Source of the DNA: Klebsormidium nitens
Lineage: Eukaryota; Plantae; Klebsormidiophyceae
Length of the DNA: 64,000 bases
Reading direction: 5' to 3'
Assembly: GCA_000708835.1 (NCBI GenBank)
Contig: DF237011.1
Span: 188,764 to 252,763 of the forward strand
The notes under the pieces are model-generated. The model was not told where the DNA came from. It worked only from the letters and a program-made list of their open reading frames with translations, and made no database searches. Position numbers and translations under genes: made by a program. The number at the start of each line of letters is the position of its first letter. Positions within the stretch are counted from its first letter, which is position 1. Below are positions 20,315-64,000 of the stretch, one piece after another.

Positions 20315-23300
20315 CTAAAGGTTGGGAGGCACGAATCCGTTGGACTTGCACCGGGGAAAGAAGTTCCCCGGGGGGTTGAAGCCGTCACAGCCGTCATTGT
20401 CGCAACAAACGTAGCGTCCCTGCGGATCGTTGTTGTACCAACAGCGGATCGGGAAGGCTGACGCGGCTCCTGAGCCGCACACTCCTGTGGACGAAAGCAG
20501 CGAGTCAGCATGACGTCTGCAAGCTTGTGTTACAGAATGTCGCAGCAATGCTTTCTTCACAGCTAGGGGTCCTATTGCACCAGCAGCGGTCCGCGAAGGC
20601 GGACCCGGCCCTTGAGCCGCATACTCCTAGCTGCATAGAATCTATCGACGTCAGCATGAAGTCAGCAATTTTATATTGAGCTGGTTCTTAAAGAGCGAAA
20701 GACTCCGAAGGATCGACGGAGGGTCAAATGGGCTCCCAAAGTTGAAGTCTCCACAAAGATCGAAAGATTTCCGAAATCCAGTCTCAAGCTCCGCTTTCAT
20801 GAGGGTCCCTGCAGCCGACGGACTAAGACGAAGTGGGTTGTGCATGCTCAAACGAGTGCAAAAGGGCTCTCCGAGTTTCGACGTACACTCGGAGAAGCAG
20901 ATCGAGTCCAGGGACTTCTTCGGTGTTACAGGTCTAGATTCCGAAATTTGAGGGCGGCGAATGGCCGCCTCCCTTCAATATATCTACGTGAGTTTCATCC
21001 TTATGAGAACGCGTTCTGAGCGAAATAGGAACCTATCACTCCGCTGACAAACCGGACGGAGCCCAATGTTTCATCCGGATCAACACACGGAAACAAGTTT
21101 GGCCATCGCCAAACCTCCTTACCCGCAGAGGTTTGCCCATCTTAACCCTGATTCGAAACATCTTCAGCTCACCTTGCGGTCCACCAGACGTAGGTGTGGG
21201 CCCGGGAGGCAAAACTTGGTTTGGGGGCACGTATCCAAAGTTCTTGCAGCGCGGGGTTAGGTTATCGGCGTTGAACCCGTCGCAACCCTGGTTATCGCAG
21301 CAGACGTATCGCCCCAAGGGGTCGTTGTTGAACCAGCAACGGGTAGGGAAAGGTTCGGCGCCCGTCTTTCCGCAAACCCCTGAAGAAATGGGATTTCAAT
21401 TTAGACGGGTTAGGACACCACTGATCGAGGCGCCACGTCACTTAGCAACGACCTCAATTTTCAATGAACAGAGGTTGATTGTGCAAGATCGGCATCCTCC
21501 CGTAAGGATGTCGATGGATGTTTCTTCCAGAATTCGTAAGGAATCTGCGCGGCGATTGTATCCATATGGGATAATCACGGAATCCTGGGCGGCCAAGTCT
21601 TCAGCGGGCCATCATGTCTTAAGCACCAACGTGTTCAGAAGACCGTTATTCGTTTCAATCTAGACTAAGGACAGTCGACGAAGGTTGATGAAGGTTGATG
21701 GACAAAATAACAATCTGTGAAGCTGACAAGTTTCAGAAGGACCAGTCCCGAGGACTCAACCCTCCGAGCTTCTTCGCGAGAGGTAGTCCGCCCGAGTGAA
21801 GCTGACTGAATTGGATGCTCGGAAGTCAATGGAGTTCCAAACGGTATAGCTGCCTGACAAACGTTTCAGCACGAGTTGATGTTAACAGGGCGTAAAGTGG
21901 GCCTGTTGAAGATCGTTCATATACGCAGCCCTTGGACAACTTGTTACTCATCGGTCGCGAAAGTCAGGTTGTGGGTCAGAAACTAATGCGTCCAGCACTC
22001 TCGCAAAAAGAATGAATAAGCACTCCGGAAGACTGCCAGAGATAGAGAGACGGAGAAAAGGTTTTAAGTGGCTGCCCAGGTGGAGCTAGACCAAGACTAG
22101 AACGGTTACATCCGCAGAAAACGTTGCTTACGTTCGAAAGGATACCGTTCGGCGGCGCGGTTTTTTGAGTGCCGACAGGAACCTACTGAAGACTTTGATA
22201 TGTGTACTGTCTGAGAGATGATGGAACAGCAGCTCGATCAAAGCATCACGGTCTACCCAGTCGGACGTAAGCCTTACCCTGGTCAGTTGTAGGAGGCGGG
22301 GGCGGCGCTCCATTCTCGCCGAAGTTCGGAGGCACGTATCCGAAGTTCCTGCAGTGGGGGGTGAGGTTGTCGGCGTTGAATCCATCGCAGCCTTGGGCGT
22401 CACAGCACACGTATCGGCCCTGCAGATAGGCAGATGGGGTCTTTTCTCATTCTTCGAACATCCCGCGCGCGATTGATTGAAACCCAGGCCACTAGGAAGA
22501 AGTAAAACGGCAGCATTCATTGTTAAAAGCGTAACGTTGACCTCTTAGATTGACGAGTACGCCCCTGAACTCGAAGCTCCCTGTCAATTGAAGCTAGAAT
22601 GGACGCTACATCAGCAAAAAAAGCCCACCTGGGTCAACGGCTGGGTCATAGAAGATAACGTCAACCCAATGAGGTTAATCCTACCAAGTGGGCAACAAGG
22701 GTTAGCTGGTTCATGATTACATTTTTACAGAACACGTCCACCTAGGTTAAATTGGGTCAAGGTAAGGATAAACCGACGAAACAGCCCACTAACCCGGGGG
22801 TCGTTGTTGAACCAGCACCTCTGCGGGAAGGCAGCCGCGTCCCCCTGTTTGCCAGACAGGCCTTGGTCCCCTGTATACGACAGATCACCGGGTTTGCGCG
22901 TTGACATGCCAGAATCTGAGCATACGTCTGTAAGAGGGGCCCTAAGCTAACAAGTAAGGTTGGATGATAGAAGGTACTTCCGACGGGAAACTAGAAAGGT
23001 CTCTCCTCTAAGACGTTTCCGAGTTCGTTCTCTTTAAATACCAATCATGATGCCAAATCAAGAGCCCCTGGAAAGCACAATGTCAATCTGAACACGAGTC
23101 AATCGAACAAAAGCTGGCTCGAAACTGTTTCCATGAAGGTAGGATGGTATAAGGTGCCCATTGAAGGCGTTTTAGAGACTCTAGTCTAAACCGCGCTGAA
23201 GCAGCACGCGGCCCAGCATCTATACAGACAAGGTGCAGCCCTTACTTATAGCCATCGGAAGTACGGTCTGATCCGACAAATCCGGAGCAGTCTGCTCTGA

Positions 23301-28433: not shown

Positions 28434-31400
28434 CTAGAGGCTAGGGGGCACGAATCCGTTGGTCTTGCAGCGGGGGAAAAGGTTGCCCGGCTGATTGAAG
28501 CCGTCACAGCCGTCATTGTCGCAGCAGACGTATCGGCCCTGGGGGTCGTTGTTATACCAGCAGCGGTTCGGAAAGGCTGACGCCGCTCCTAAGCCGCACA
28601 CTCCTGCGAGGATACACTTGACGTCAGCATGACGTCAGCAAGCTCGGAATTGGAATTCAAATGACCCGGAGCGGGAGGTCACGGAGTCAGAAGGTAGACG
28701 GAGGGATGGAAGAGGATGCCGGAGCTTCGAAGTCCCTCGCAGAGGATTATCACACGTCCTGTCTAGAAGGTCCCTTCCGACGCAAACATCGAGAAACAGT
28801 ACCAGCAAAAGCGGCGATCGAGGCGAGCTTTGCAGTACCGCAACGAATTCTGAAGGGCTTCTGCCTCTTCAAAAGAGAAAAGCCGGAGTCGGTAGCCTTA
28901 TTTCGGGTGCACGGAATCAGGTTTGGGACTGGGAATCCTGAGCAGAATGGAGTAAGCAAGGGCCAACGCCCTTCCATGCTGATCCTGATCGGCTATTCTG
29001 GCACAGCGGCACAGCAAAGTGCTCGGCAAACTTACTGCTGATTTGCGTTTGGCACGGGGCAACTTAAGTTGTTCATACCCTCTTGTTAAAAAAAGCAAAC
29101 CCATGTATAAACCACGTCGAGCATGAAACTTTCACCCCTTTGACCATATTTCAAACCAGCTTGTAGCCAATCCCTGTTCATTACTAGTGGATCCTGGGCA
29201 CGGGAGGCGGAGGCGCGGATAAACAAAGGACGTGACCCGTATCTGCGCATGGTAACCATGAAGCAATTTAACCCCAATTTAACCCAGTTTTGAACTCACC
29301 TTGCGGTCCACCGGTGGGTCCGGGCCCGGGAGGCGGAGTGCGGGCGAACTTCAAGATGTCGGGCACCAAGCCAAAGTTCTTGCAGTGCGGGGTTAGGTTA
29401 TCGGCGTTGAACCCGTCGCAACCCTGATTATCGCAGCAGACGTAGCGCCCCAGGGGGTCGTTGTTGAACCAGCACCGGGTGGGGAAAGGTTCGGCGCCCG
29501 CCTTGCCGCAAACCCCTGAGGAAAACGGGTACGTTTCAAGTATCAGTCGGGTCGGAGTCTTTCCCATACAGCTTTCAGCTTAGGACAGATATTCTGTTTC
29601 ATCGAGTGGTCGATGAGCTGAACGGCTCAGGCCCAATTGTTTGCTCACCTAATCAGACTTTTATCCTCACTCAAACAAAAGGATTCTGCAAGAACGGGAA
29701 CTCTTACCATGTTGCGTGGACAACAAAGGCGATGAGTCTGTTCGTCGACGGAAATCAGTCCTTGACAATCCTCATTGAGGACTGGTTACTCCTGCGCTGA
29801 TAGGTTGCAAGTCCTTCAGCTAACCAGGTCACAAAAGCACTGGCGCGAGAAAGGAGTAACATACTCATCATGATCTGAGTTGTCGAGCTGGTTAGATCTT
29901 TGATCAGGTTAACAAGGTTCAGTGAACCTCATTCCGGATCCGTTCGTTTGGAGTTCTCCGCACGCACGTATTCAGTTCGTTTCGGGACGAGAGTACGATA
30001 GTGAAGAATCCAACATGAATCAGGGTTCGACGCGACTCCAAGACGCAAAGACGAGTCTCCGTGAAAGCAAAGCGGACCAGAAGGTCGTTCACATCGGCAA
30101 TCCTTACACTCATTCGTTCCCCACTGAGGACGAACGACGGTCAGGATTGTAAGTTCGGAAGTGGTATCAAATTTGCTCGTCGAAAGGCCCGGCCTGAGAC
30201 ATCCAGCTTCTTTGCACAGATAAGTTCGCAGCACTCAAAGAGGAATCACAACCCAATGTCAGAAGCTACGCGCAATCTGCTGAAGCGGCTTCCGATATTA
30301 GCGGAGATTGTTCTCCGGTTATACACGCGAGGAGACACCGACGTCTGGTGGTGTGTCATTGGGGTGCTGAACGTTTGCTGTGTACACTGTCCGACAATAA
30401 CCGGAATCAAGGAAACAAGTCATAGAGAGGTTGACCTGAACCTTACCCTGGTCAGTCGTTGGAGGCGGGGGCGGCCCTCCGATTTTGCCAAAGTTTGGAG
30501 GCACGTATCCAAAGTTTTTGCACTGTGGGGTCAGGTTGTCTGCGTTGAATCCTTCACACCCTTGGGCGTCACAGCACACGTATCGGCCCTGCAGGTAGTA
30601 CCAATAAAATGCTAACACTCTTTAAGGTGTTCAATCGAGTCCTCGTTGAGATCGGGTACGCATCCAACTTCGGCAGCATCCGAATCCAGAAGTTCAAGCG
30701 TGAGCTTCAAGAGACAGTTCGGGACTTCACCCCTTGTTTCATCGAAATTCGTCTCATACTAGCTGAAACTTGGAGCTAGACCAAACAGAGACGAAAAGCC
30801 CCCGGCTCACATGAGTTTGGCTTCGTTGCAAACTTGGAAAACCCACATGGCTTAGCTACAGTGATTCTAAACCAACAGAAATACCCACATGGGTTAGCGA
30901 GGACACGATAGTCCTCAACCCACCGAAATGCTCACTTACCTCGGGGTCGCTGTTGAACCAGCACCTCTGCGGAAAGTCAGCCGCGTCGCCTCTGCCACAG
31001 ATCGGGCCTTGTTCCACTGTATACAAGCATAGCCGGATTAGAACCATAACCATGCCTGGTCAAGTCTCTGAATCAGATTAGTGCCCAGGAAAAAGAGACC
31101 TTAACCGCAATTGGTAACCGCACATCGGGGCCGGCCGGATGATAGTAAATACTCCCTAAGCAATCTAGGAGGGTCTATTAGTTTTCCTGACTTCATGCAT
31201 GTACTTTTTCTTTCCAGCCTAGATGCCAACGTGGGGGCGTCTAGCAAGCAAAGCTGGCCGCTGCTCGACTGATCAAAAGAGAGATCTGCACCAAACCGAG
31301 ACGCAAAGGGTAACACGGTAATGAATGACGTTTCTCGGGCTCATTGTGATACATGGCTCCACGCTCCAGCAGCAAGCAGCATACCAGTGAAGGACGAGCT

Positions 31401-34331
31401 GAATCCTTTGCCAGCGATTTGTAAACAAATCTGTAAGAGAATCTGCAGCAAAAGCATGCCATCCGAAAGTAGATTGAGAAACGAGAAGCGTAGCACCTAA
31501 TGAAGGCAGAGAAGATACAGCTTGTGCCAGCGACTCATACACGGATAGGACAGTTTGGGCAGATTGCATGCATCTTAAAGTGAAGTAAAGCGAAGCTCGA
31601 CTGAAAGTGTCGTACCAGGCGGTTCAACGACAATGATAGGTGTGGGAGAGGGAGTCGGAGTGGGCGGCGGAGGTCCAGTCCTGGGCGCGGGGATGGGAGC
31701 TGGGTTTCTGCAAACAACGGAGCTACGGTTTCAGTGACTCATATTGGTTAAAAGATCTTGGTCGAGTGTCTTTCGACCAGAGGGAGAGCGCCCTTTTAGA
31801 GAGCCTGACTGGTCAACATATGGTCAACACGAGATGGACAGAACGGATAGGCGGTAAGCTGCTCACATGCTCGTTATGAAACCGGTCAAAAGAAGGCAAT
31901 TCCCTTGACCTTTTAGAATGACAGATAGCTTGTTCAGTTGACCTGGTCTTGACCAAATTCGTTGGTGTCTCCGAGTGGGCTGCCATGCAAACCCCTTTGA
32001 ATTGCTCCAACTTGATAAGGGGATTAGCAGGGGACATAAACCAAGACGGTGGGGCAGAACCTGAGCACGTAACCCGTTGAAAATAACAGTGACGTCTGTG
32101 GTGCCTGGACCTGACGGAATTCAGAACGGGATTCAGAACGGTATTCAGAGCGGTTTGTATCGAGGTTATGCAAACCATCGAAAACGAGAAAAGGAGCATG
32201 GGACTGATCTAAACCGTCTGTGACCTGAACCGTGACTCTTGCTGAAACGGAGACGAGTCAATTCCAGCGTCCAGTCGTCTTCTGGCGGGTGAGGCAATGC
32301 CGCCTTCCAAGTTGTTTGGGAAAATTTTGATTACTCGCAAACTCACACAGCTGTCAAACTTACGGGAGTTCGCAAGTGGTTCCCTGGAGGTTACTGGGGC
32401 AGGTACACCTGAAGGCGCCCTGGACACCGTTGAAGTCTGTGACTGCCTCACACGTGCCTCCGTTCTTGCACGGGTTTGGGTTGCACCGATCGGTTCCTGC
32501 TCGGTAAGAGGATTCTGTTTGGAAAATGTGAAAGCCCCCATGTAAGAGTCTTCTGGCATCGATTTTTGTTCGGATATCAGGGAAGAGACCATCTTATCAG
32601 AGCAGCAGGCCTCTTTATCGAGGTAGAAGATCGATCTTGACTTCGGACAAAAGTTAATAGGATTGGGAACGAGAGTTTCCACTTTTTTGGCCCATACAAC
32701 GGCCGCCCAGCCTTTACCTCGCAACACTGCCTAGCATTCACTGTGTTTCCAGATTTATATATGACATGCAGCTACTGCCAAACTTGGTGCGGCTTGGTTA
32801 TGAAGAGCTCTTTAATTAATAGAGACATTGGGTGAGGCCTAATGAAATGCCCTCAAAAGTGTAACAAGTAGAGAGCAAACTCGTTGTCTAAGACTCTCCT
32901 CATACGAGAAGCCTTGCTCTGAAAACTTTTAATCAACAGCTAGACAGTTATTAGCCAGGCCTTAGACGTTTTATGCAGCAAAAGGGCACCTGCCACCGTC
33001 AACTGAGCTCCATAAGGGACAAAGCCTTGCTGCATAGCACACAATGCATTCATGACTTCATACCCAGCTTTATCTTCCATATGAGTAGAAAGACCTGAAG
33101 AATCACTGCATGTAATAATAGAGGAGCCATCAAGAGAGAAGAGCTTCCAACCTGGGTACCCTGGCACATCGCAAAGAGGAAATAGTAGGAGACCTACTTA
33201 CCTGGCACGTAGCAAAAGTCTGCGTAGACGATGTGGCTGAGTATAGAAGGGGCATTGCAGATACACACGGACTCAATTGCGGTGCGCCCCGAGATGGTAG
33301 TCGGCTTGTATGTACACTGGTTACCTGCAGGGTTACATCACTATGATGAGCTCAAGTGAAAGCTTGAAACATTGACACCTTTGCTGTGGGTCTAGCACAG
33401 AGGAGAATCCCATGTCAACCCTTGTCTTGTTACTGCTTTTGTGCCTGGCAGGTTTGAGTGTGGCTTTTGGCGCGTTTATTGCTAGGATTAGAATGAATGG
33501 TACTTGTGAAATTCGATGTCTCTGAAGAGGGAGAGGAGGTGCGTCAGATGAAGTTAATAGGAAGGCTCCGCCGAAAAGGCCTTGTACAGCCCGGGCTGGC
33601 TCACTGTGGCACTGTTGACTCTGGCTGACTTTGGCTGACTTGGATTGACTTGGGGAACATAAGCTTGAGGCCTTGGTAGATGAAGAGTACCTCAAAGACA
33701 CAAAGACTCTGCTATTTGCCATTTTAGATTGTGGAGTAGAATTTCCGGAGCTATCAGGATCGTTCTTGTGCTGGGAGAGAAGGGCAACATCCCCAAGTAA
33801 AGGTGCAGCTGATGACTTTGTGAAAGTTGGACAAAGAGAGCAGTACAGTGTCAGCAATCTTAAACCGTGACTTCCTGGTCGAAGCGCCCTTGCATTTGGT
33901 CAGAGCACAATCTTGAGGCTGGTCTAAGCAGCACCTTGTTCTGTTTGAGCCAAAACAACAGTGCCTGCAAAATCAAGCTCACTACATACGGCAACATGTT
34001 TGTCACTTTCAACCGACTCGTTTCTGACCTTGACCTCAACAGGGTTTTCAAAATTGCTTTCAAAATTGAGCTCAGGCAACTACGCAATGTGACAAATTGA
34101 TAGGAACGTCAACGACAATCTTACCTGCACCACAAGGACCAGGATTTCCAAAGCATTTATCAACGGCGCACACCGGGGGCAAGGCACCAACAAAATCGTT
34201 CAGGCCCGAATGAACCCAGCAGGGCAGGAAAAGTCCTTGTCGACAATCAGAGAAACAGTTGCTGTGGGAAGAGAGATGCAGCTTGCAATCATTAGCAAAG
34301 CAGCAGCGCGAAGCGCCATTGCGGCGACCAT
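28434..34331 (-). pseudogene. Paralog B: same 8-exon architecture with a frameshift in exon 1 (pseudogene or assembly indel)
   Basis: Exons 34331-34125, 33324-33202, 32496-32364, 31707-31616, 31016-30940, 30588-30447, 29515-29300 and 28603-28434. Exon 1 is 207 nt where 3n+1 is needed; ..TTC ATT CGG GCC TGA gives a stop at 34202-34200, while the downstream frame [27 protein letters not shown] is intact. All other exons are open with canonical splice sites. Confidence 0.8.
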
Positions 34332-35329
34332 TTTGCTGGCACCAAATTAAAAGCTCTGAAAGTTCCCGAAAGTCTAAACCCTGGCGCTCATTAATGTGTC
34401 GTCCAACCTCTTTGAAAATGAGCACCTGTGATAAAGCTTAGCTACAGCAATGGGCCCGATAATTCATCTGAAGAAAGACCTTTCTGTGAAGTGCTTTCTG
34501 TAGAATGCTGCTCCTCTAATACCCAGGAGTCGGTCCATAATGCATGGGGATGCCGTAACGATTAATCCCAGCTAGTGGGCGCCCCCACTTTGATCCCAGC
34601 TCTAGCATTGCTTTTGGCAGCTGCCTGAGCAGCCTGCTAGCGCCACCCTGCTACCGGTTACCGGTACAACAGTCTAGGGCCGGTCTGACTACCGGTAGCT
34701 AGGTTACAGGTAGCTGGGGGAGAATCACATGCAGGAACAGTCGCACTCCTGTATCAAACGCAGGGATCAATCATCATAACCCAGTCTTCGGAGTAGCGGA
34801 AACTGGCCGCCACCCTGTAAACCTACTTGCGTAAACCTTTTGGTTACGAGAGCCAAGTGTCGCTGTGAAGTTTCTCTGAGGCCCGGGGATTTGACCAGTG
34901 GGACCCAGTACTGCTGACAAGCTGCCAGGTGGCAGCTGCTTGGCTGGGTAGCGCGCTGCGTCAGCGATGTCGTCATCCGGCGGTCTTCCTCCTCAGAGTC
35001 ACTCTGAAGTACAATGATGCGTATGCGACATTCTCGCAAGGGTGACCCCAGCAGGGTCACCCTGCAGGCTGCCAGTGCGAGTCACCCAGGCGGCTCCAAA
35101 GTCCAGAGTACGGTACCGGTTAACAAATTTGAGGCAGTTCCCTATTTTGTCACGGACATCAGCACATGCATGGGTGCCCACTGCCTAGCGCTTGTGCATG
35201 TCTAGCTGCAGCTGCTGCTTCATACGGTATAGGTACCTCATATTTGGAGGGTCAATCTTTGCGCTGAATGGGCGATTCTCTGAGGTCTGCAGAAATTGTG
35301 GCAGCTAATTGAGCTGAGGTCCGGGGCTC

Positions 35330-35528: not shown

Positions 35529-38500
35529 ATGGTGGTCACAATGGCGCTCCGCACAACAGCGCTCTTCCTGATCGCGAGCTGCCTCTCTCTTCCTGCGTCG
35601 GCGGCGGACGACTCTCAGAGTATTGTCGAAAGGGACTACTCCTGTCCCCCCGGCTTCATTCCCTTGCCCAATCAGGGCGCCAACTATAACCCCAGTTGCG
35701 CAGTCGATCGCTGCTACGGGACTCCTGGCCCTTGCGGCGAAGGTACGTTGCGCTGTATGCCGTTTGCATGATAGTGTCCTCTTTTATTTGATTCAGGGAT
35801 GAATCAGGATTACTATTGAGGATGCCAAGAGCAGATTGTCAATTTGCAATCACAAGAATGCAGAATTCTTGTCGGATTCTGCAATGAATTACAAAACTTG
35901 TGATTGAATCAGGGTTGCAACAGCAGAATCTGATCCGCAGCGCCTTGTTCACTACTGGCACCTGCACCACGCCCTGGGAAAGAGTCGATAAAGAAATGCT
36001 GCTTAGACAGCTGGCAGCCTTAAGCGCTGATTGCTCTCCCCCCAGGCACGCAGTCATAAAGGTGCCATTGCATGGTAAACTCGAGCAGACTAGGAACTTA
36101 AACGTGCTAAATCGTGCTTGTTTCAGCTGCCCGTGCTGCTCTGCGCATCTCAATGTCTTTGGCCCCTCTGTCTTTGGATGACTGGCCCTACTCTCCCGAA
36201 TCGGTAGAGTTCTGTCCCTTTATCAGTTACTTCGTTGTCCTTCCTAACCGAAACCTGTCCTTACTCCCTTCTCCGGCTGGTTTCCTGCCTCCCCATCTGA
36301 CTCTTTCTCAGCTGTGCTCAGCTCTTCCTTAGGACTGTTTTCGCATTATCAACTTGGACGGAGAAGTTGCAGAGGAACTCACAGGAGATCTTGGTTGCTA
36401 ACCAGGCTGACTACCAGACTGAGTCTCAGGTTACTAGCCAAATATCCCAGCTTTGACCTTCTTCCGGGGCTGGTTGAAGCCCAAGTCTGGTTGCTGGACA
36501 TATAGCCAGTCTCTGACCGGCCATAAACAGCCCCTAACCATCCATGCTTAACAGCCAAAACCTGGTGTGATTGTGTATGGTACGTTGATCGCTTCTCATG
36601 GAGTAGATTCTCAAGGCAGGAGGACAGATAGCCCTGGTGGAGTGGATTGTATATGCTGACGTCTTCTCCTGCTCATCAAGGTGGTGACATGTCACATCTG
36701 CAGGTAACCAGTGTACATCCAAAAAGTCTACGGTCTCGGGGATATCTACATTCGAGTCTGTGTGTACCTGCTCGGCGCCTTCCGTGCTCGCCCACATTGT
36801 CTACACGGACTTCTGCTATGTGCCAGGTACTTATAACGAACGTCTCACTATGGCTATCTACTTCTCAAGAGTTTTCATAGTAACTTCTGGCTGCTAACCG
36901 TACTGATTTAAATATCAGAGTCGAGTCTCAGGTTATTGGACAGATAACCGGGCTCTAACCTTGTTTCAAGGCTGGTTACCGCCCAAGTCTGGCTACTCGA
37001 CAGTTAACCACTTTGAAACGAGCCCATAGCCAGCCCCTAGGTGTCATCGTTACGAGCCAAAAATTCCTGTGAATTTCGCACAGGCCTAGCAAGGTCTTTT
37101 ACTCCCCGACATGTTTCCCTACGTGCCAGGGTACTAGTTTCCGGGTTAAGTTCCTTCCTCTGTGTCTTCCCTGTCAGATCTTGTGCATTCCATCTCTTTC
37201 GCCGGTGTTTCGACTACTCACAGTGGACGAAGGACAGGGTAGTGTAATGAAGCTATGCATGCATTTGAAGGTCCTGCAGCAAGGCTTTGTCAAAAAAAAA
37301 GGGTGTTAACGGTGCCAGGCTTCTACCATGTAGCATGCCTGAGGCCTTGCTTGGCTGGGGTATGCTAACGTCTAACCAGCGTGGTTAAAACACAAGTTTT
37401 TTGGAGAAGGAAAGGTTGAACCCAAAGAGTTTCCCTCCGAGTGGACATGCTTTGGAGACACGTCATCAGACCTCCTCTCATGTCCCTGTGATGGAAGACT
37501 ACTTATCCAAGCACCAACCAGATTTGAGGAGCTGAGACGATCCTGCAAGTGTAATCTAAAATATGTGGGGTGTGCAGCGCTTATAAGCTGCGGGCTAAGC
37601 TTCTCAGACTCGATTCTCAGATACGTGCTTCAATTCAGATGTTCCCTCTCCAAGTTGAAAGTTTGCTGCCCCGCTTAAGAGGCTTGTGCTCGGTTAAGGT
37701 GTTCTTTTTCCCCCACCGTCACCTAGGCGTGTGGAGCTGCTAAAAGTCCCATTACGGATACATCAGCTACTTTAGTTTGCCAAATTGAATCCTTCTTGCT
37801 GCGCAGGGACTGATCGCTGCAACCCCAACCCGTGCAAGAACGGAGGCACTTGCGAGGCAGTCGCGGACTTCATCAGCGGTGAAAAACGGGCCTTTGTTTG
37901 TACCTGCCCCCAGAACTTCCAGGGGGTCACTTGCGACCAGCCGTAAGTTTGATGGCTGCGTCTGTTTGCGAGTGATTAAAAGTTCCAAAACCACGTGAAA
38001 GTTGCAGGGCAGAGTTTGAAGGGTGGCCGCTTATATGGGCTCGTCCCCATCACGAAGTTCTAATGCAGATAGGTCTTTTGACGGGGTCGAGTTCAACACT
38101 TGTGAGGGTCTGACTTTGGAATGCGCTTGGTCACCTTTCGAAGAGTCTTTATACTAAACATTCTTGGAAGTCAAAAATAGGGAGAGGCGTCGCTCAATCA
38201 TGCTCCTAGATCCTACTACTCCCAACCTTATACAGTGATCGGACACAAGCAGCTGGTATGCACCGTTATCCATCTCGAGTAAAGGGTAATCACGTGCCCT
38301 TCAAACGGACCCTCGATCTAGCTTGCTTAATGTACCCTTAACAATAGGTCTCCCCAGTACCCAAGCTCAACTCGGAACAAAGGATCCATCAGCTGACAAG
38401 GACGAGCTCAAGAAAGATTATTCCGTCTTGGAATAAGCAGAAAATGTTTGGGCCCGCTTTCGTTTGAAGGGTGTTTTTGTTGAAAGTAGAGGTCGGTTAG

Positions 38501-41500
38501 ACGTCCAAATTGTTGAGTTAGGACGTGGTTACTAGCTAGTTTAGCTAGGCTAGTTTCGACCGTACGATCTAGAGTTCTTACTCAGTGTGAGCCGTCGATC
38601 AAGGAGTTTTTACATGAGGATACTAGAGGGCTAATTGTAGGCTCGACTAGTGTGACTTGGACGTTTGTATTGTGATGGGAAAATCATACTAAGAGATGCT
38701 TGTTGGGAGAAGAGCGCTTCCTTGTGTGAAGGCGCTTGTGTTGAGGGTGGTCAAAGCCCCGTTGGTTTCAAGCATGTACGTATGATTTCAACATTTCTGA
38801 CCCAATTGACCATCTTTCAGCCTAGCACACTGACCGGGCAGACCGGGATGCATTAACCAAAAAGGGTTGTTGACAACTTCGCTCTGTTTGTGCAGAAGCG
38901 AGAATCCGGCACCCACTCGCAGGAACGGAACCTCGCCCCCAACCCTGCCTCCCACTCCCCCTCCTACCACTGGGCCGCCGATTATCATCGATGGTACGAG
39001 AACTTAGCTCCGGTTCACAATTCTCCACTTTACTTGACTTCATTTTACTCTACTTCACTCATTTTACTTTACTTCACTTCAAGGGAAAAATTGAAAATGA
39101 TTCTGATTCTGCGAACTGAGAAACAGAATCCAAAGTCTGATGATTAGATTGAGTTACTAACTGTGAACGGACTTGCAAACTGCTTCCATTCAATTTGCAG
39201 GAAAACTTCAAAGTGCTGCGATCTTTGTTGAAACTTTCAAACGATTACTGATAGTGTCGTTCTGTCTTGGCTGCCGCTACGCTGGAGATGCTTGACCGGA
39301 TGTTCCGACAGCCCAGGGAACGTTACTCCGTACCCTTTGCGACCTTCTTAAGAAGTCCTTCAGTTTGTATTTCCGATTTTCCGTCCCTTCCAGCGGTTTG
39401 CGGAGTTGCCAGCTTTGCATCGCAGATTAGTTCCTGATCTGCGCACGTGAATTGTATATTGAAATTGAACGGCCTCAGGAACGAGTGATCAAGCCGAGAG
39501 ATGTTCCTCGATTCCACTCGAAGGCATTACTGCTGTTCAGTTCTACTTTGGACAAGTCAGAAACTCTGTTCCAAACAATTACTATGGTCAGAGTCTGCTT
39601 AGATGCCCTTCGAACGTGCATGGTTACATTCAAAGCCCACTTATTCTTGTTTCAGGAAATCAAGGCCTGTGTGGCCCGGGCGAATTGGCCGAGGCGGCTC
39701 CCTTCCCGCAGAGGTGCTGGTTCAACAACGACCCCCAGGTTAGTGGGCGGACTGCGTGGGTTAAGGACGTGTGTCCCTGCTAACCCATGTTGATTTCCTG
39801 GTGGGCTCAGATACATCGTGTGCCAGTTAGCCCTTGTGGGTTACTCAATTTCAAAGTCAGCCAACCGAAGTCACGTGGGCTCTTCGATTCCTGAAAGCAA
39901 GCCAACTCCTTTGGGCTTAATTGCGCTCATTAACCTAGCTGATTCGTACCCAACTTCATACCAGCTTCGAAACAAGACGTGAAGTCTGCGATGGTCGCTC
40001 GAGGTTTCAAACTGAAGCTTCTTCAATTAAGGTTCTGCAGAAAATTGTGGATATGCAGCCGATCTGATCAACCATGCGCTTGAAAGAATGATAGAAACAT
40101 TCATTTCTTGCTTGCAGGGCCGATACGTGTGCTGTGACGCCCAAGGCTGTGACGGATTCAACGCCGACAACCTCACCCCCCACTGCAAGAACTTCGGATA
40201 CGTGCCTCCGAACTTCGGCAAAAGTGGAGGGCCGTCCCCGCCTCCTGAAGGTGACCAGGGTAAGATTTGAGCGAACCTGGTCAGGCGTGACCTTTTGACA
40301 GTGCGCTGAAACTGTTCTAATAGCGTTTGCCAGGCAAGCTGTACCCCCGATTATTCATGCTTCTGTAATCTACGAAAGAGGCGCCACCCAACGATGCGTC
40401 GCCTCTCGGGCCCTTTGTAAGGCAGAAACGTTTCTTTAGATGAGCCTCTGCTTCTCGGTCTACTAATTTTGGTCGGAAACGCCGTTGAGGGCTATACTGC
40501 CTGGTCTTTGGGGATCAGCATTCAAAAGGGCAATTGTGACGGCTCGCGACAATTGTTCCTGCCGGTGCTTTTTAACCTGGGCCCTGCCCGCTCGAGTAGA
40601 GTCACGGTGCTGGTGACCCATACTAGCTATGATCGCCTACTAATCAGCTGTCCCTCAAACAGCATCGCGGCTCCGATCTTCAATGCAACACGAGGGGATT
40701 CGTCTCCTACACGATCCTCAGGCTCTGTTCGGGATGTCCTTGAATCGAGTACAGCGGTGCCCAGTACTGCACGTCAAGGAACAGAACATTTTGAGGAATC
40801 CTAAAGCTCGTGAAAGCCTCCAAACCCGTCTGAATCGAAACCCCTTTGCCTCAGGCGTTTGCGGCAAGACGGGCGCCGAGCCTTTCCCCAACCGGTGCTG
40901 GTTCAACAACGATCCTCTGGGGCGATACGTTTGTTGCGATAACCAGGGTTGCGACGGGTTCAACGCCGATAACCTAACCCCGCACTGCAAGAACTTTGGT
41001 TACGTGCCCGACAACTTCGGCCGCACTTCGCCTCCCGGCCCGGGTCCCACTGGCAACGGGGGGCCGCAAGGTAAGCTGCAAACCGGGTTTTCATATTGGG
41101 TTAGTGTATACTATAACGGGTGAAAGTCTCCGGTTTGAAGTGGGTTAGACGCCATGGATTTGTTTCCACCTATCAGACCATATGAGCATTTTGCCCCCGT
41201 GCGAATGTCGAAGCAGACGTATTTTGCAATGTCAATGTGCTGTGGCCACGCCAAAAGAGCTAGGCATCGAGGAGCCGTTGAAGCTTAGTCGACTCGCTAG
41301 CCTCACGAACCTGGCCCTGATTCTAATTACCGGAAAGTACGACCGATTCCGTAGTTGCTCGTTGTATTTCGACGCTGGAATTGAAAGCCCTTTTGCAGGC
41401 GTGTGCGGGACGGAAGAATTCACTCCGGCTTTGTCCGCTGGGAGCACGTACTGATCCTCTTGACCCTCACAGAGTAATATCTCGAGACAGCACTGTGTGA

Positions 41501-41812
41501 AAATGCGTTCTTAACTTGCGGAAAAGCTATTCAGGCATCCCATCTGCTCCTTCGTCAATCCTTCCATTTCGCGACCTCACGCGCGTTACCCGCTCAAATT
41601 GCAGCTTGCTGACTTCATGCTGACTTTGAGATTTGCTCGCAGGAGTGTGCGGCTTAGGGGCGGCGTCGGCCTTTCCGAACCGCTGCTGGTACAACAACGA
41701 CCCCCAGGGAAGATACGTCTGCTGCGACAATGACGGCTGTAATGGCTTCTATCAGCCGGGCAACCTTTTCCCCCGCTGCAAGACCAACGGGTTTGTGCCC
41801 CCCAGTCTCTAG
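35529..41812 (+). CDS. Paralog C: secreted EGF/EGF/Pro-rich/3x six-Cys-repeat protein, 393 aa, intact, inverted relative to A, B and D
   Basis: Exons 35529-35742, 36704-36826, 37807-37942, 38896-38993, 39656-39738, 40118-40259, 40855-41070 and 41643-41812 total 1182 nt with phases 1,1,2,1,0,1,1 and no stops. Signal peptide MVVTMALRTTALFLIASCLSLPASA; ends ..FPRCKTNGFVPPSL*. Confidence 0.92.
36393..36540 (+). repeat. ~150-bp dispersed repeat, copy 1 (intron 1 of C)
   Basis: Begins gg(t/c)tgctaaccagg and contains gagtctcaggtta, ggctggtt, gcccaagtctgg and cagcccct. Shared with 36889-37041, 44908-45036(-), 48779-48920 and 52947-53078(-). Confidence 0.8.
36889..37041 (+). repeat. ~150-bp dispersed repeat, copy 2 (intron 2 of C)
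   Basis: ggctgctaacc..gagtctcaggttattggacagataacc..aaggctggttaccgcccaagtctgg..cagcccctagg. Confidence 0.8.
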
Positions 41813-47045: not shown

Positions 47046-48778
47046 CTCACCCTAAACGGACAATTAGGGCAACAGTTTTGTGTCATGTAACTTTCTCAAC
47101 AAGCTGTCTGATTAGAAGCCGACAAATTTCTAAAGGAGGGGTGCTTGGGCGCCAATCCACTGTGAGGCAATAAATCAACGGAGCCTAAGCAACGGCGGCG
47201 GCTAATCAACTAATCAACGGCGGCCAAGTACTCAACAACTAGGCAACGGTCGAAGAGTCGAACACAAATGTCTTTGTGTACGACAATGCACTCAGCGGCG
47301 CCGGCTGGTCACTCTACCGGCATCAGTATGCCAAAAGCTTCTCTGAATACAGTGGCCTCTTCGAGCAAAAACACTGGAGGTGGGGGGGCAAGAATCCGTT
47401 GGAGTCAAAAACCTAAAAACGTGAGAAGCGTAACACCCCAGAAACCCTAAACCCTTTAGAGGCTGGGGGGCACGAAACCGTTGGTCTTGCAGCGAGGGAA
47501 AAGGTTGTCCGGCTCGTAGAAGCCAGCACAGCCGTCATTGTCGCAGCAGACGTAACGTCCTTGGGGGTCGTTGTTGTACCAGCAGCGGTTCGGGAAGTCT
47601 GACGCTGCTCCTAGGCCGCACACTCCTGCGAGAAGACACTCGACGTCAGCATGACATCAGTAAGCTCAGGTTTGAAACGACCTGCAACGGAGGTCGTGAA
47701 GTCGGAAGGTCAAACGGGCTTCGGAATCCCTTGCGAAAAGCGGATTCACACGTTTTGTAGTCCCTTCGGGCGCAAGTATTGGGAAACTAACCGGACGCCA
47801 AAGCGGATGCGATTTTTTAGTACCGCAAACAAATATGCCGAAGGGCTCTTGCAGCTTCAAGACTGTAGAAGCAATTTCCGAGGGAGTCAAAACACGTTAT
47901 TGGTGCCCTTAGAAGCGGGTTCGGTTTCGAGATTCGTGAATAGGCGCGATTAGGCAAGGGGCCAACGCACTTCTATGCTGAGCAGCTCTTTCGGCATAGC
48001 CAGCATCCTCGGCAGAGTTATTGCTGATTCACATTTGGGACGGGGCAGAGCGCTTCATACGCAAGAAACAAACCCATGCCTAACCCTCATCGAGCATGCA
48101 TCATTCACCCGGCTTTAACCATGATCCAAACCAGCTACCCTTTTCTTTATTGATCACCTAGCTGGCACGGGAGGCCAAGCGGATAAAGAAAGGACGTGAC
48201 CCATACCGGACTCGTTTTAACCCAAAGCTTCGTCTTTTTTAACCTTACACTACCCCAGTTTCCAACTTACCTTGCGGTCCACTGGCGGATGCGACGGGCG
48301 CGGGAGGCGGCATGCTACCGGACATGTTGGGCACATAACCAAAGTTCTTGCAGTGCGGGGTTAGGTTATCGGCGTTGAAACCGTCGCAGCCCTGGTTATC
48401 GCAGCAGACGTAGCGGCCCTGGGGGTCGTTGTTGAACCAACAACGGGTGGGGAAAGGCTCAGCGCCCGGCATTCCGCAAACGCCTGAGGAAATGGGGTTT
48501 CGATTAGACGGCCGAGTTCGAAGTTTCATACGGGCTTTGTGATTTCAAGACGTTCTTTGATCGTAGCTGTTAAAGGCACTGCCATACTCAAAAGAGACCC
48601 GCAAAATCTTTTCGAGTGCAAAAATAAAAGATTCTGGGGTTGAGAACACACCGTCTGGTGGAGCGCTATCTGGGTGAGGACATGAGATAATTCGAAGTTC
48701 GTTGAGCAGAGTGTCGGGCTATCAACGACATAACAAGTTAAAGAAAAACGTCATAACCAGGCCAACACAGGAAGGTTT

Positions 48779-48920: not shown

Positions 48921-51517
48921 AAAAACCCTGTGCTATCAACGACATAACAAGTCAAAGAAAGCGTCATAACCAGGCTAACGTAAACCTTACCCTGGTCACC
49001 CGTAGGAGGCGGGGGTGTCGTAGGAGGCGAAGGCGCCCCTCCGCTTGCGCCGAAGTTTGGAGGATAGTATCCACGGTTCTTGCAGTTGGGGGTGAGGTTG
49101 TCGGCAATGAATCCGTTGCAGCCTAGGTAGTCACAGCAGACGTATCGGCCCTGGAGGTAAGAGGAAAAAGAAGTCTTCGAACACTCTTCGAAGCGCTTGA
49201 TTGGGATCCGTACGGCTTGACGTGCTCTGTGTCATAAATTTTGAGCGGGGAGCCCCGCCTCTCCCAAGAGGGGCAGCATACGTATTCGCTCGACTTGAGC
49301 GTGAGAAGTTAAGCGCAGTGATTCACCCCTTGTTTAGAAGCTAACTAAAGCTACAGAGAATTTGAACTATGTAGTCCAACAAATGAGGCGAAAAGCCCCG
49401 GCCCACATAGGTTTGGCTTTGTTGCAAAAATGGAAAGCTCGCATGGTTTTGCTGGGTTACCTGGTTCTAAAGGACGAGAAAGCCTACATGGGTTGGCGGG
49501 ACACGGTAAACCGTAACCCACTAAAAAGCCCACTTACCTGGGGGTCGTTATTAAAGTAGCACCTCTGAGGGAAAGGGAGCCGCGTCCCCTAGGCCACAGA
49601 CGCCTTGGTCCAAGTAAGGGCCTTGTATACAAGCAAAGCCGGGTTAGAACCGTTATCATGGCTGGTTGAGGGTATCTCGATCAGATTGAGAACAGAGTCC
49701 GTCTGTTGAGAGGGCCCCTAGCTGACCACAAAGTCGTAGTTGGGGCCGGATAATAATAAGTACTTTCTAACAAATGTGATGGTCTTTCTCTTGACTCGTT
49801 CTTAAGATTGCTACGCCAGTCCAGATGTCAACGTGAAAATTCCCTCGGGCCAATCAAAGCTGGCAGCTCCACAACTGATCAAACTATTCCGGGCGCTCTG
49901 CGAGAGCTGCCGTCACACTCCGGCAACAATCAGCCGCATAGCATTCAAGGGCAGAGAAGATAGCTGTGCAGCGACTCATACAACATTGCGACCACAGCGG
50001 ATTGCATGGAACATCAAAGTCAAAGAAATAAGGCGGATTGACTGAAAATCTTGTACCGGACGGCGGAAAGTTGCCGAAGGGAATGGGAGGGCGACTCGAC
50101 GTCGATGTGGGCGGCGGGGTTGCCGTCCAGGGCGTCGGTTGGGGAGCTGGATTTCTGCAAAGAAACGGAGCTACAATTTCAGTAACCCATGTTGGTTAAA
50201 CGATCTTGGTCTAGTATCTTTCGACCAGAGAAAAAGCGCTTTTCCGAATTTCGTCTTGATCGGTATATCTTGATCAAGACGAGGCTGAAAAGACGAACGG
50301 GTTGTAAGCTGCACAAGCTCCTTGAGTAAACCGGTCAAAGGATTGTTTTTTTTTGCGCAAAATGCGGCCCCTGACTCAGTTGGACCTGATTTTGACCGGA
50401 TCCGCTGGTGTCTCCGAGTGGACTCTCACACCGATTGCTTTAATCTGGATTTTGTAAGGGGATTTTAAGAGAATGACACCATATAACCAAGACGGTGAAG
50501 TGAGGATGCCGAAGTAGCGACGTCTGTTTTGTGTCCGGTGACGGGGTCCAGGAGGGTTCTGTATCCCGGTTAAGCAAACAACCGAGGTTGGAAAAAAGGA
50601 GCATCGGATTCATCTTAAACGTGAGCGATCGAGAACCTAGTCTAGCCTCATCTTGCTGATACGAAAACAAGTCGATTAAAAGTTGCCAGTCGACTTAGAG
50701 GAAGGTTTTGCTGGCGCGTTGAGCAAATCTCATCCTTCATGTAGTCTAATTATTTTTGTACATAAAACTTTAAGCATTCACAGACTCAAACGGCTATCGA
50801 ACTTACGGCAGCTCGCAAGTGGTCCCCTGGACGTTGCTGGGGCAGGTACATTTGAAGGCACCCAAGACACCGTTGAAGTCTGCGACCGCCTGACACGTGC
50901 CTCCGTTCTTGCAGGGGTTGGGGTTGCACCGATCGGTTCCTGCGCGCCAAGAAGAAATTCTGTTCGGAAAACTGTAAAAGCCCCCAAGTAAGAGTACTTC
51001 TTTTGGCATCAATCCATTTGTTTCAATGTCAGGGAAGAGACCGTCTTTTCAAGGCAGCAAACCTCTTCTCAAAATGAGAATACAATCTTGTCTTCGGTGA
51101 AAGACAATTTCCTTGGAATGGAGGTTTCACTTGGACTTGTACTTGCGCGCAGCCTTCACCTCGCAAAACCTGCCCATTGATTACTCTGTGGGAAGATGTA
51201 CACTCTTGGCAACAGATGTGTCGAGGCCTGGTTAAGGGCTCTTGTAATCTATATGAACATTGGGTGAGACCTAGTGAATGCCATGCCCTCATAACCAGAA
51301 TGACAAGAGAAGAAACTCAGTCTCCTTTCTCAGGAAGCCTTGCTTTGAACCCCGTTCGAGCATCAGGGCCTAATCACCAATTAGCCAAGCCTCAGCAAAA
51401 GGGCACCTTCATCTTTACTACTCATTGTGACTCAGCTCCATTATGGACAGAAGCCTTACAGCAGAGTCTGACGATGCATGCATGACTTCATACCCAGCCT
51501 TATGGTAATTCTGAACA

Positions 51518-57279: not shown

Positions 57280-58850
57280 GCTGTGGACGCGCATGTTGTG
57301 CAAATGGAAAACTCCCCGCCCAGCCTGAGAAGCTCCCGTGCACGATTGGCAAAAAGTGACGCGCGCGCTCGGGAGTCAGTGGCGACCAATTAGGGCTGAG
57401 ATTTGGTCATATTTAGTGAATGGCGTGAGATTCAATCCAAGCAACCGACGTAACTACTCTCCGTAGACATGGGCAGCAAAAACAAAAGTTTTGTGTGTCC
57501 TTCTCACTTTGAGGCATCCAGTATCTTCTTGTTACTGGCACTTCGCAAACAGTGGCTTCGTGCTTCAGTACGGTCCTTGAAGCTGCAAACGTATGCTAAC
57601 TCAATGATGCTCGACCGACCACAGAGGACCCCGGATCGGCGTTATTAAACCTTATAAGGACGGCTCAACCCTTCGGCCAGCGCCCGGCGCAGTCAGCTAT
57701 GGCCGTTAAGGAACCTGGAAAGCTCTTATACTTTGATGCCCCCGTCCCCGTTCGACTAAAACGGGCCGGAGGCTTCGCACGAGTATTCCGCAAACCTCAG
57801 ATCACAACACCGTACAGTCGGGTACGCGCTTCAGACTTGTCATCCAGCCGCTGAGGAGTGGCCCCTTGCTCCGCCAGCCGTCTTTTCGTCAGTGCCCGAA
57901 GGACCTTCATGTGAGCAGCTTCCGCTCTCGGCTTTCGTAAAGCTAGCGCCGCGTTTGAGTGCTCAGGCGCAAACACTTTGCAAGCCGGGTGCAGTTCGGA
58001 AATCAGGATACACAACACGTCGCCGTACAACTTGCATGGTTGCTGTTTTCCTGTTTCGTGTCCACGTACAGAAGTAGAACTAGACTAAGGAGATTCTTTC
58101 AAAAGTACAGCAGGTTTGAACTGCAGCTGGTCTTGACTATAGACTACGTACAAACGTGTACCATCAGTATTCGTAACCCTACGAGGAGGATAAAGAAGGT
58201 CTCGGTAACTGCAGCCGACAACAATTCTGGGGTGTAACGGTCGGCTTCAACCGCAGTCGGAAAAATGAATGAGCGACGTACTGCTCAGTTCCACGCAATC
58301 GTTGCCGTATACAATAAACCTTTTCTGATCTAGAGGTGAAGAGGTAGAATTTGTGTGGGCCTGCCTTTCCCGCAGCTTGCGATCGACAGCAAACTTGAAG
58401 TCACCGCCAGATTCGACGATTCAAAGACACGAGAGCCACACTAAAATCCGAACGGGATGCATCGCCAGTGAAAGGAGCAGAAGGCAGGTTCCGCGTTCAC
58501 CTAATTCATGCGGCCGGCCACACAGAGTCTAGCTAATTTGAACGTTCAATGCGTTGAACAGTATGTAATTGACCAAGTTGAACGTTTCGACGGCTTAATT
58601 TTCAACGTTCCCACGCTTCCGCAGTCGAGATGGGTGGCTCCATGAAAGTGGTTCATAACCTCGGATAAGGCAAGTTAACCCGGCCTCAGGAAGGGCCCAT
58701 TCACTGCCAGAACTAGTGAGCGGAGACTGAATTATCTCTGCAAAAGTTCGGCCCGGCCGTAATATATACTCCTAACGGCAGCCAGTGCGAATTCTCACCA
58801 CGAAACGACATGGCAAGTGCCATGGAGGTGCTTGTCATTGTTTGCGCAAA
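57280..58850 (-). pseudogene. Copy 1 of a duplicated, decayed coding-like segment
   Basis: Collinear with 62180-63930 through many shared anchors (ggagtcagtggcgacca, ttcttgttactggcact, gtgagcagcttccgctctcg, tcaacgttcccacgctt). Minus-frame peptides align between the copies but are broken by stops and frameshifts. Confidence 0.55.
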
Positions 58851-62179: not shown

Positions 62180-63930
62180 TCTCGTGCGCGCGCCCTGACA
62201 AATTGCTGACGTGCAAAACTGCCCGCCCACAAGCCTGCAGAGACCGCACGCAGCCAGCGGCAAGAAATAAGGCGCACGATCAGGAGTCAGTGGCGACCAG
62301 GGGCTCTGAAACGGACATAAATGCATAACCCGAGATTTCGTCACGCGTAATATTTCCGTGAACATGGGCAGCGAAACGATCTTGCTAGTGTTTCATGTCC
62401 TTGCCACTCCGGCGCCGGCACATCCAGCAAATTCTTGTTACTGGCACTGTGCAACTGGCTCAGAATCTCAGGACAAGGTGTGCTTGAAGGATGCTTGATC
62501 TAACATTGCGTACCCGGATCGGTGTTATCAAGCGTGATCGTTTGAACTACGAACAGCTCAAGGGCCTTCTGCCAGCTACTTTACGGACGTTTAGGGCTCT
62601 GTAAAGCCTCGAGAACTTTGATGCCCGGTTCCCGTCCCAGATGAGCGGGTCGGAGTGCTTTTAAAGACTTTTCGCAATTCTGCTCACACGATCACTATCT
62701 TTCAGTTGGGTACTAGTAGCTTCAGAGTAGCATTTAGCACTGAGGAGGACCCTCGGCCAGCCGGCGTTTCGTCAGTGCCCAAAGGAAATGGTCTCAACTT
62801 CATGTTGACTAAGGGCCATGTCGACTAAGGAAAGTACCCGGGGAACGGATCGGGTGGATTCCGGATTCTCTGAGGTGGGTACGGGTGCAAAGCGTACGTG
62901 TCAATATTTCTTGGTCTATAGGTTTTTAGTTTTTCTGTTGCCACAAGCGCTATCCTTACTTAAAATGCTCTTGGTCAACCCTTAATCGTGAAGTATCCCG
63001 GAGGACCGTCGTGTGAGCAGCTTCCGCTCTCGTCCGACCGCATATGATTTCAGCGTGTCTTCGAGCCCCAGTACTTTGACACGGTATACCACACGTTGCC
63101 GTTCAAGATGGTGTTCGTGGTGACAAAACGAAATAAGTTACAAAAGCTCGTCGAGTAAAGAAACTGCTGGTGACATAGACTACCTTTTGCATTCGATATT
63201 TTGCATTTAAACAGCGAACCAAGTGATGTAGAGCAAACTTCAGAGGATATTGAGGAGGTCCCGAACGTACTTACAGCCACAAAAAGTTAGAGGCCACTAA
63301 GGAGGTCAAAAACGTAACTTCACTCGCCAAATCTTTGGGTTCACAGGACGGCTTCAACAGCATCAGGGATGTCATTGAGCGGACTGCTCACCTCCATTCA
63401 ATCATTGCCGGGTACAATAATCTATGATCTAGAAATGCGAAGAAATCATGTGGGCCTGCCCTTCTCGCAGCTTCCGACCGACAGCAAACGAAGAATCGTC
63501 GCCAGAGTCGACGTCGACATTTTCGAACACACGAGAGTCACACTGAAAGCCGAACGAAATATACCGCCAGAGGATAAAAGGACAATTGGAAGTTTTCGCC
63601 ATTCAGCTCCACGCGGCCAGCCACGTCACAGGGTCTAGCTTTGACGTTCAATGCTTTGAAAAAAGTAGATACTCGACAACGTTGCGCATTGTGACAGTTT
63701 ACACTCTCAACGTTCCCACGCTTTCGTAGTCGAGACGGGTGGCTCCATTGAAGTATACCACCTCGCCTAAGGCAAGTCAGGCTCAGTAAGGCCCCACTCA
63801 CTGCCCGATTTAGGAACGGAGACCGAAATACTTATATAAGTCTTGCAAAATCTCGGCTGGCCGAAGTTACGAAGCGCTGACGGCAGTCTGGGCGGGTTCA
63901 CCACAAAACGACAGGGCAACTGCCATGAAG
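62180..63930 (-). pseudogene. Copy 2 of the duplicated decayed segment, interrupted by a MITE-like insertion
   Basis: Same anchors as 57280-58850, with an extra ~215 bp between cagtgcccaaagga (62786) and ggaccgtcgtgtgag (~63003). Confidence 0.55.
62792..63000. mobile_element. MITE-like insertion, same family as 54286-54513
   Basis: Absent from the homologous position in copy 1 (~57900). Shares the left TIR-like end and the core with 54286-54513; the right end is degenerate. Confidence 0.65.
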
Positions 63931-64000
63931 GCGCGCCTGCCTTTAATGTTAGCGCATGCCTTCCAACTTGAAAGCTTCTGTGGCACTGCTACTTCATCGC

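Follow-up and report, generated by a model that had tools for sequence, protein, structure and literature searches.

What is the cysteine-rich module that closes four neighbouring genes of the alga Klebsormidium nitens, where does it come from, and what could it do for the proteins that carry it? The genes, here called A to D, are intron-bearing paralogs in a window of 64,000 nucleotides (contig DF237011.1, positions 188,764 to 252,763 of the forward strand). Six-frame motif scans of this window find 12 copies of the module, three at the end of each gene, in agreement with the count of a first reading of the DNA made without database searches (the sequence-only reading). Each copy comprises about 50 residues with six cysteines and is set apart from the next by a proline-rich spacer. 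Searches of sequence and structure databases support a new small disulfide-rich module, and its standing as a database-novel, genus-restricted domain family is solid. Its function is a matter of weighing, and we put the probability that it serves as a multivalent unit for binding to or anchoring in the cell wall at roughly 0.5.

The Module and Its Conservation

The motif, ...C-W/Y-F/Y-N-N-D-P-x-G-R-Y-V-C-C-D-x2-G-C-x-G-F..., is found at all 12 sites in the form in which the sequence-only reading had given it. The cysteines are spaced x11, x11, CC, x4, x11-12, and the CC pair is followed by D-x-x-G-C-D-G-F. The earlier spacing of x11 to x13 between the first two cysteines needs correcting for repeat 1 of gene A, which has x14. 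Ten of the 12 copies are canonical and intact; the exceptions are repeat 1 of gene B, which is frameshifted, and repeat 1 of gene D, in which Ser replaces Cys1. The signatures proposed for particular positions are real (GAEPFP in repeat 2, and GAAS.FP ... FPRCK.NGFVPP in repeat 3).

Conservation was counted over 84 module instances in 44 proteins, which include 68 complete modules, 65 of them distinct. All six cysteines are in register in 68 of the 68 complete modules, and a search of the family for natural variants with a paired loss of cysteines, which might have revealed the disulfide pairing, found none. In the 65 distinct ones the six cysteines, D18 and Y23 are 100% conserved, followed by F9, G21, R22, F34 and P42 (98%) and by G2, A6, N16, P19, D27, G30 and G33 (97%). 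Six columns of this 50-residue domain are aromatic in at least 95% of cases (F9, W/Y14, F/Y15, Y23, F34 and Y/F49). Comparison of the window with itself restricts the conservation among the four paralogs to exons, and the ratio of nonsynonymous to synonymous substitution rates (dN/dS) is 0.07-0.18 for all six gene pairs (Nei-Gojobori method, concatenated module cores), indicating purifying selection. With exon-limited conservation and ratios this low, the module pattern is far beyond chance.

In a tree of the part shared by the 12 copies, these cluster by position within the gene: repeat 3 (R3) forms a clade with support 1.0, and R1 and R2 are nearer to each other than to R3. Because the copies group by position, the triplication is older than the gene duplications, and the sequence-only reading was right on this point.

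Exon Organization

Gene structure and module boundaries are well defined. The module exons occupy 39656-41812 (+) in gene A, 49621-47456 (-) in gene B, 31016-28434 (-) in gene C and 22870-20315 (-) in gene D, with canonical AG/GT splice sites at every one. Modules 2 and 3 are encoded by a single exon each, while a phase-0 intron interrupts module 1 after NNDPQ. The module 2 exons measure 207-216 nt, all multiples of three, and are in phase 1 at both ends; taken together, the two exons of module 1 likewise begin and end in phase 1, with lengths of 83+142 nt in gene A and of 77+142 nt in genes C and D, and the phase 1-1 units as a whole span 207-225 nt. A conserved Gln-Gly ahead of each module corresponds to the exonic part of the CAG/G or CAA/G donor with which the preceding exon ends. 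The spliced sequences are those of annotated proteins and transcripts only: module 1 of genes A and C comes from the annotated proteins, and for genes B and D the two halves of module 1 were each analysed on their own. Since the exon units are symmetric in phase 1, copies can be gained, lost or moved between genes with the reading frame kept.

The Carrier Protein

The sequence-only reading took the modules by themselves, and its interval of 39656-41812 does contain real module exons. These make up no more than the 3' half of the gene, whose start lies at 35541, and the modules are the tail of larger proteins, annotated as hypothetical, with a signal peptide and an EGF domain. Gene A is KFL_000620310 (GAQ80797.1, here P0035), which encodes 389 amino acids, and gene C is KFL_000620300 (GAQ80796.1, here P0040); both entries come from K. 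nitens assembly GCA_000708835.1, were retrieved by a word search with a family member and then mapped to the window at 100% identity. P0035 aligns in blocks at 35541-35744, 36703-36831, 37806-37943, 40115-40261, 40854-41072 and 41642-41809. The order within gene A is a signal peptide, a cysteine-rich region with EGF, a proline-rich spacer and three modules, each with a short proline-rich spacer of its own. The N-terminus reads MALRTTALFLIASCLSLPASA/ADD and is by eye a signal peptide (MALR, a hydrophobic stretch, then ASA/ADD); the C-terminus is ...VPPSL and shows no hydrophobic tail. The EGF family PF00008 matches residues 113-149 of P0035 with 27.4 bits and P0040 with 22.7 bits, both above the Pfam gathering cut-off of 21.5. 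In the self-comparison of the window the duplication reaches several kb further upstream than the modules, and translated comparison finds three further exons conserved among the paralogs. The UniRef name of these hypothetical proteins is EGF-like domain-containing. The proline-rich spacer is likely hydroxylated and glycosylated.

Search for Known Relatives and Predicted Structure

No Pfam family was found for five modules of the window, for 32 family members (E<=10) or for the modules of about 25 full-length carriers; a Scytovirin match in one of the 32 members (E=0.036) was set aside as chance. Three profiles gave no sequence match in PDB, only chance rows. AlphaFold2, run on an alignment of 32 rows, yields a confident model with a best predicted local distance difference test score (pLDDT) of 90.3 and a predicted template modelling score (pTM) of 0.70, the five models ranging from 85.9 to 90.3 in pLDDT. 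The 53-residue chain is predicted to form strands at 11-14, 23-26, 31-34 and 41-43, and no helix. This run replaced a model from 11 rows (pLDDT 65), which was discarded together with its meaningless Foldseek search. For the pLDDT-90 model no usable neighbour was returned by Foldseek against PDB, by VIA-align in its wide form and on a second look, or by the shape search of the ESM Atlas, and the feature search of the ESM Atlas gave no usable match; for a domain of 53 residues such negatives in sequence and structure searches are no proof of a new fold.

The sequence-only reading had described an unassigned small disulfide-rich module, which a match to a described domain or fold would have removed, and the description has survived Pfam, the PDB profiles and Foldseek on the pLDDT-90 model. 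Its remark that the chitin-binding motif of hevein is absent is borne out by the analysis of conserved columns.

Distribution, Expression and Mobility

A profile search of the kind suggested by the sequence-only reading, built from the modules and run against 1.84 billion representative proteins, gives 28 matches at E<=1e-3. The two weakest of them (P0029 and P0030) were rejected as unrelated, with PAN/TSP1 and low complexity. The named sources are all Klebsormidium, namely K. nitens, with at least 15 annotated "hypothetical" proteins, and transcripts of K. subtile; the remaining matches are Logan, JGI and ENA contigs. As far as sequence databases reach, the module appears so far to be restricted to this genus. 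The most divergent module (L006, 10004-10165) has 42% identity and reads FPGDNSGKRY for FNNDPQGRY. It lies on a eukaryotic Logan contig from SRR23617307 (30.9 kb, GC 52%), where it adjoins genes with a Tcp11 domain, and may point to a relative other than K. nitens and K. subtile.

The K. subtile Trinity transcript P0034, 81% identical to gene A along the whole length, bears out the splice pattern; P0001, P0039 and P0041 are further Trinity transcripts of this species. P0006 and P0013 are encoded on intronless Logan or JGI contigs, and P0036 (388 aa), which is similar to gene D, lies on a contig of 1,816 nt. These transcripts, the intronless contigs and the short contig of P0036 are evidence that members of the family are expressed.

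The surroundings of the module vary. Behind EGF-type heads it is present in three to five copies; it also stands behind a different head of about 200 aa in P0010 and behind LDLa-like repeats in P0020, comes immediately after the signal peptide in P0017 and P0006, and occurs once inside larger multidomain proteins. The N-terminus of P0010 looks fasciclin-like by eye; this is not claimed, as Pfam returns nothing for it at E<=1. From these varied heads, and from the pairing with the shorter subtypes described below, the module is mobile between carriers.

Two shorter subtypes with the same cysteine pattern are found in the same proteins (CP...SCF...HVCC.NPDSCG...C and C...GCL...Y.CC...CGP.GPDG.P.C). 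They stand at the C-termini of P0006, P0018, P0020 and P0026, and internally in P0012, P0026 and P0041. Profile-profile comparison with hhalign gives P=6e-6 for types I and III, P=8e-6 for types II and III and P=6e-3 for types I and II, the third type forming the bridge. This suggests that the three subtypes are one genus-wide superfamily, a provisional grouping drawn from small, cysteine-biased alignments. The short subtype of P0020, used as the query of a word search, returned only P0020 itself. In P0017 (KFL_008230020) a single module is followed by two copies of another cysteine-rich unit (...CDCPGAVG...YCCIDQPPYDQLCGD...), which are split by a Pro/Thr-rich spacer and have no Pfam match.

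Damaged Copies and Decayed Exons

Gene A is intact, and the other three genes carry lesions. The first exon of module 1 in gene B (R1a) has one T too many (it reads CCCTTTCCC, against CCCTTCCC in the other genes), and the frameshift leads to a premature stop; 10 extra nucleotides at the acceptor disturb the acceptor region as well. The second exon (R1b) is under relaxed constraint, with dN/dS of 0.33-0.56, whereas modules 2 and 3 of this gene are still constrained. Either module 1 of gene B is in the course of being lost, or the gene is a young pseudogene, or the assembly contains a homopolymer error; skipping both module 1 exons would preserve the frame. Exon 1 of gene C (34110-34335, -) has a net gain of 5 nt over gene B, its signal-peptide reading frame runs into a stop, and the annotated protein starts in another frame without a signal peptide. 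Gene C is probably mis-modelled or decaying. Module 1 of gene D has TCT (Ser) at Cys1 and is left with five cysteines, a position kept as Cys in all other copies and also in P0036, the D-like, transcript-derived protein from an environmental sample.

Genes A, B and D also have decayed "VCG" pseudo-exons between modules 2 and 3, that of gene B at about 47830 (-). They begin with a splice acceptor and GVCG..., then meet stops or have lost cysteines, and look like relics of a fourth module. The lesions and the pseudo-exons together mean that module exons are being born and lost in the cluster. The coordinates are collected in Table 1.

Table 1. Positions of gene A and of the module exons and pseudo-exons of the four paralogs in the window
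Feature	Position	Strand	Basis
Gene A, KFL_000620310	35541..41812	+	100% mapping of P0035
Gene A, EGF-like exon	37805..37943	+	Pfam EGF match; exon conserved in 4/4 paralogs
Gene A, module 1 first half (exon R1a; phase-1 acceptor, phase-0 donor after NNDPQ)	39656..39738	+	Junction confirmed by P0035
Gene A, module 1 second half and Pro-rich spacer (exon R1b, 142 nt)	40118..40259	+	Sequence read
Gene A, module 2 and spacer (216-nt phase 1-1 exon)	40855..41070	+	Sequence read
Gene A, decayed module-like pseudo-exon (acceptor, GVCG..., then stop)	41399..41454	+	Intron between modules 2 and 3
Gene A, module 3 and stop codon TAG	41643..41812	+	Sequence read
Gene B, module 1 first half (broken; +1 T, 10 extra nt at acceptor)	49538..49621	-	Sequence comparison
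Gene B, module 1 second half (relaxed constraint)	48991..49150	-	dN/dS
Gene B, module 2 (213-nt phase 1-1 exon)	48271..48483	-	Sequence read
Gene B, module 3 and stop	47456..47625	-	Sequence read
Gene C, module 1 first half	30940..31016	-	Motif scan, P0040 mapping
Gene C, module 1 second half	30447..30588	-	Sequence read
Gene C, module 2	29300..29515	-	Sequence read
Gene C, module 3 and stop	28434..28603	-	Sequence read
Gene D, module 1 first half (Ser, TCT, for Cys1)	22794..22870	-	Motif scan
Gene D, module 1 second half	22278..22419	-	Sequence read
Gene D, module 2	21173..21379	-	Sequence read
Gene D, decayed module-like pseudo-exon upstream of module 3	20545..20627	-	Motif scan, self-comparison
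Gene D, module 3 and stop	20315..20484	-	Sequence read

Unrelated to the module genes, the window also contains a direct repeat of about 600 nt (58239-58831 and 63346-63934, 71% identity).

Proposed Function

What we infer from here on is the ligand, the binding and the pairing of the disulfides. The module looks like an autonomous extracellular unit of about 50 residues, predicted to be all-beta and presumably closed by three disulfides, and would act as a non-catalytic binding or anchoring unit that holds secreted carriers on a polymer of the cell wall, probably a polysaccharide. With tandem copies on stiff spacers the attachment would become multivalent. The sequence-only reading had proposed binding of carbohydrate or Ca2+, with avidity from the three copies, and both ideas are plausible. 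A binding type of function is suggested by the six aromatic columns kept at 95% or more in so short a domain, together with the retention of all six cysteines. Several observations weigh against this proposal. In such a small domain the conserved aromatics may simply be the core, and the invariant N-N-D-P-x-G-R turn, with many Asp and Asn residues, would also suit metal binding. Pfam scans of the carriers found detect no glycoside hydrolase or other identifiable enzyme of the wall joined to the module, lesions in three of the four gene copies imply that not every copy is needed, and the literature, searched by topic and by identifier of gene or protein, yields no description of the module or its genes.

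The alternative that holds up best, though we give it only about one chance in five, is a structural protein-protein unit that associates with itself or cross-links wall glycoproteins, for instance through the invariant tyrosine, and binds no carbohydrate. The carriers resemble hydroxyproline-rich wall glycoproteins, their proline-rich spacers having SPPP and PPPPP runs; they contain EGF domains, which are typical protein-interaction modules; Y23 is invariant, and the Pfam scans of the carriers find no catalytic partner domains. However, the modules are without the Tyr-x-Tyr cross-link motif of extensins, and multivalent tandem copies suit the binding of a polymer equally well.

Somewhat less probable is a divergent member of a known disulfide-rich fold, a knottin or a hevein-like CBM18, missed for its tiny size, in which case the function would follow that family and could, for example, again be glycan binding. 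The C-C-CC-C-C order in all 68 complete modules would fit knottin or hevein-type pairing. In the model the arms of a hairpin (strands 23-26 and 31-34) bear the CC pair and Cys5, one on each, and hevein domains likewise carry the CC pair and the next cysteine on the arms of a beta-hairpin. Structure aligners are weak at 53 residues, where a missing match is no sign of a new fold; what speaks against such descent is set out in the comparison below.

An array of defence peptides or inhibitors, knottin-like and possibly cut free within the spacers, is improbable. Tandem small six-cysteine modules on one secreted precursor are known from plant antimicrobial-peptide precursors, and the family, confined to one lineage, has grown in tandem clusters. 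By contrast, the spacers are rich in proline, vary, and share no dibasic or other site for processing; the very low dN/dS is unlike the diversifying pattern common in defence peptides, and some modules stand singly inside larger multidomain proteins. Least credible is a stiffener that binds Ca2+ through N16, D18, D27, D/N32 and D38 in the manner of cbEGF or LDLa and has no glycan ligand: its acidic and amide columns hardly vary, and EGF and LDLa-like repeats, which in many cases bind Ca2+, turn up alongside it, but it matches no known Ca2+-binding consensus and no Pfam Ca2+-binding family, and Ca2+ would be compatible with ligand binding too.

Multivalent binding or anchoring in the wall is the reading we prefer. 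A more ambitious version of it is tentative and, on balance, doubtful: that the module is a new fold as well as a new carbohydrate-binding, wall-anchoring family, born in the Klebsormidiophyceae and carried by phase-1 exon shuffling to a large number of secreted proteins as a lineage-specific wall toolkit of a land-dwelling alga.

Significance

Klebsormidium is a standard model for the adaptation of green algae to land, and the cell wall is central to its desiccation tolerance. A strongly conserved, genus-restricted module on at least 15 annotated secreted proteins offers a handle on lineage-specific wall biology. Its size of about 50 residues and its confident predicted structure make it expressible, testable on polysaccharides and usable as a wall probe, and if it does bind glycan it would be the founding member of a new family of carbohydrate-binding modules (CBM). 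The cluster is also a clear case of animal-style phase-1 exon shuffling in the plant lineage, in which births and deaths of module exons are still visible.

Comparison with Known Systems

Hevein domains (CBM18; Pfam Chitin_bind_1) resemble the module in general appearance. Like them, the module is a small, secreted, disulfide-rich and aromatic-rich unit, often in tandem or fused to other domains; the first six cysteines have the same C-C-CC-C-C order, and the CC pair and the next cysteine lie on a beta-hairpin, in the module a predicted one. It has six cysteines instead of the eight of the short-loop hevein pattern, longer loops (x11/x11/x4/x11-12) and no Ser-x-aromatic-x-aromatic motif after the CC pair. 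The hevein model PF00187 matches neither the five window modules nor the 32 family members, and the structure searches with the predicted model, weak at this size, returned no solved hevein domain.

Knottins, or inhibitor cystine knots, whose disulfides pair I-IV, II-V and III-VI, share the order of the six cysteines, secretion and the all-beta form of a mini-domain, which for the module is predicted. The module, however, is longer than most of them, matches no known knottin family in Pfam, PDB sequences or PDB structures, and is repeated inside large proteins instead of being a free peptide. Pollen_Ole_e_1 (the PAC domain, PF01190), a wall-protein domain with six cysteines, has no match in the modules or in full-length P0035 and P0040. 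The EGF model PF00008 matches the N-terminal part of the genes and not the modules themselves.

The CBM1 tails of secreted proteins in fungi and oomycetes, borne on Pro/Ser/Thr-rich linkers, offer the functional analogy: here too a small, disulfide-stabilised, aromatic-rich module sits on a proline-rich and probably glycosylated linker, and the algal module may work like these wall-binding tails. No similarity of sequence or fold was found (PF00734 does not match), CBM1 has about 36 residues and four cysteines against about 50 and six, and the carriers here are EGF-type or other non-enzymatic proteins, not hydrolases.

In its genetics the module resembles the exon-shuffled phase-1 modules of animals such as EGF and LDLa. 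One module corresponds to one symmetric phase 1-1 unit, which is duplicated, lost and recombined, and it even co-occurs with EGF and LDLa-like repeats. The domain itself is a different one, and the same mode of assembly is seen here in a streptophyte alga and within one genus.

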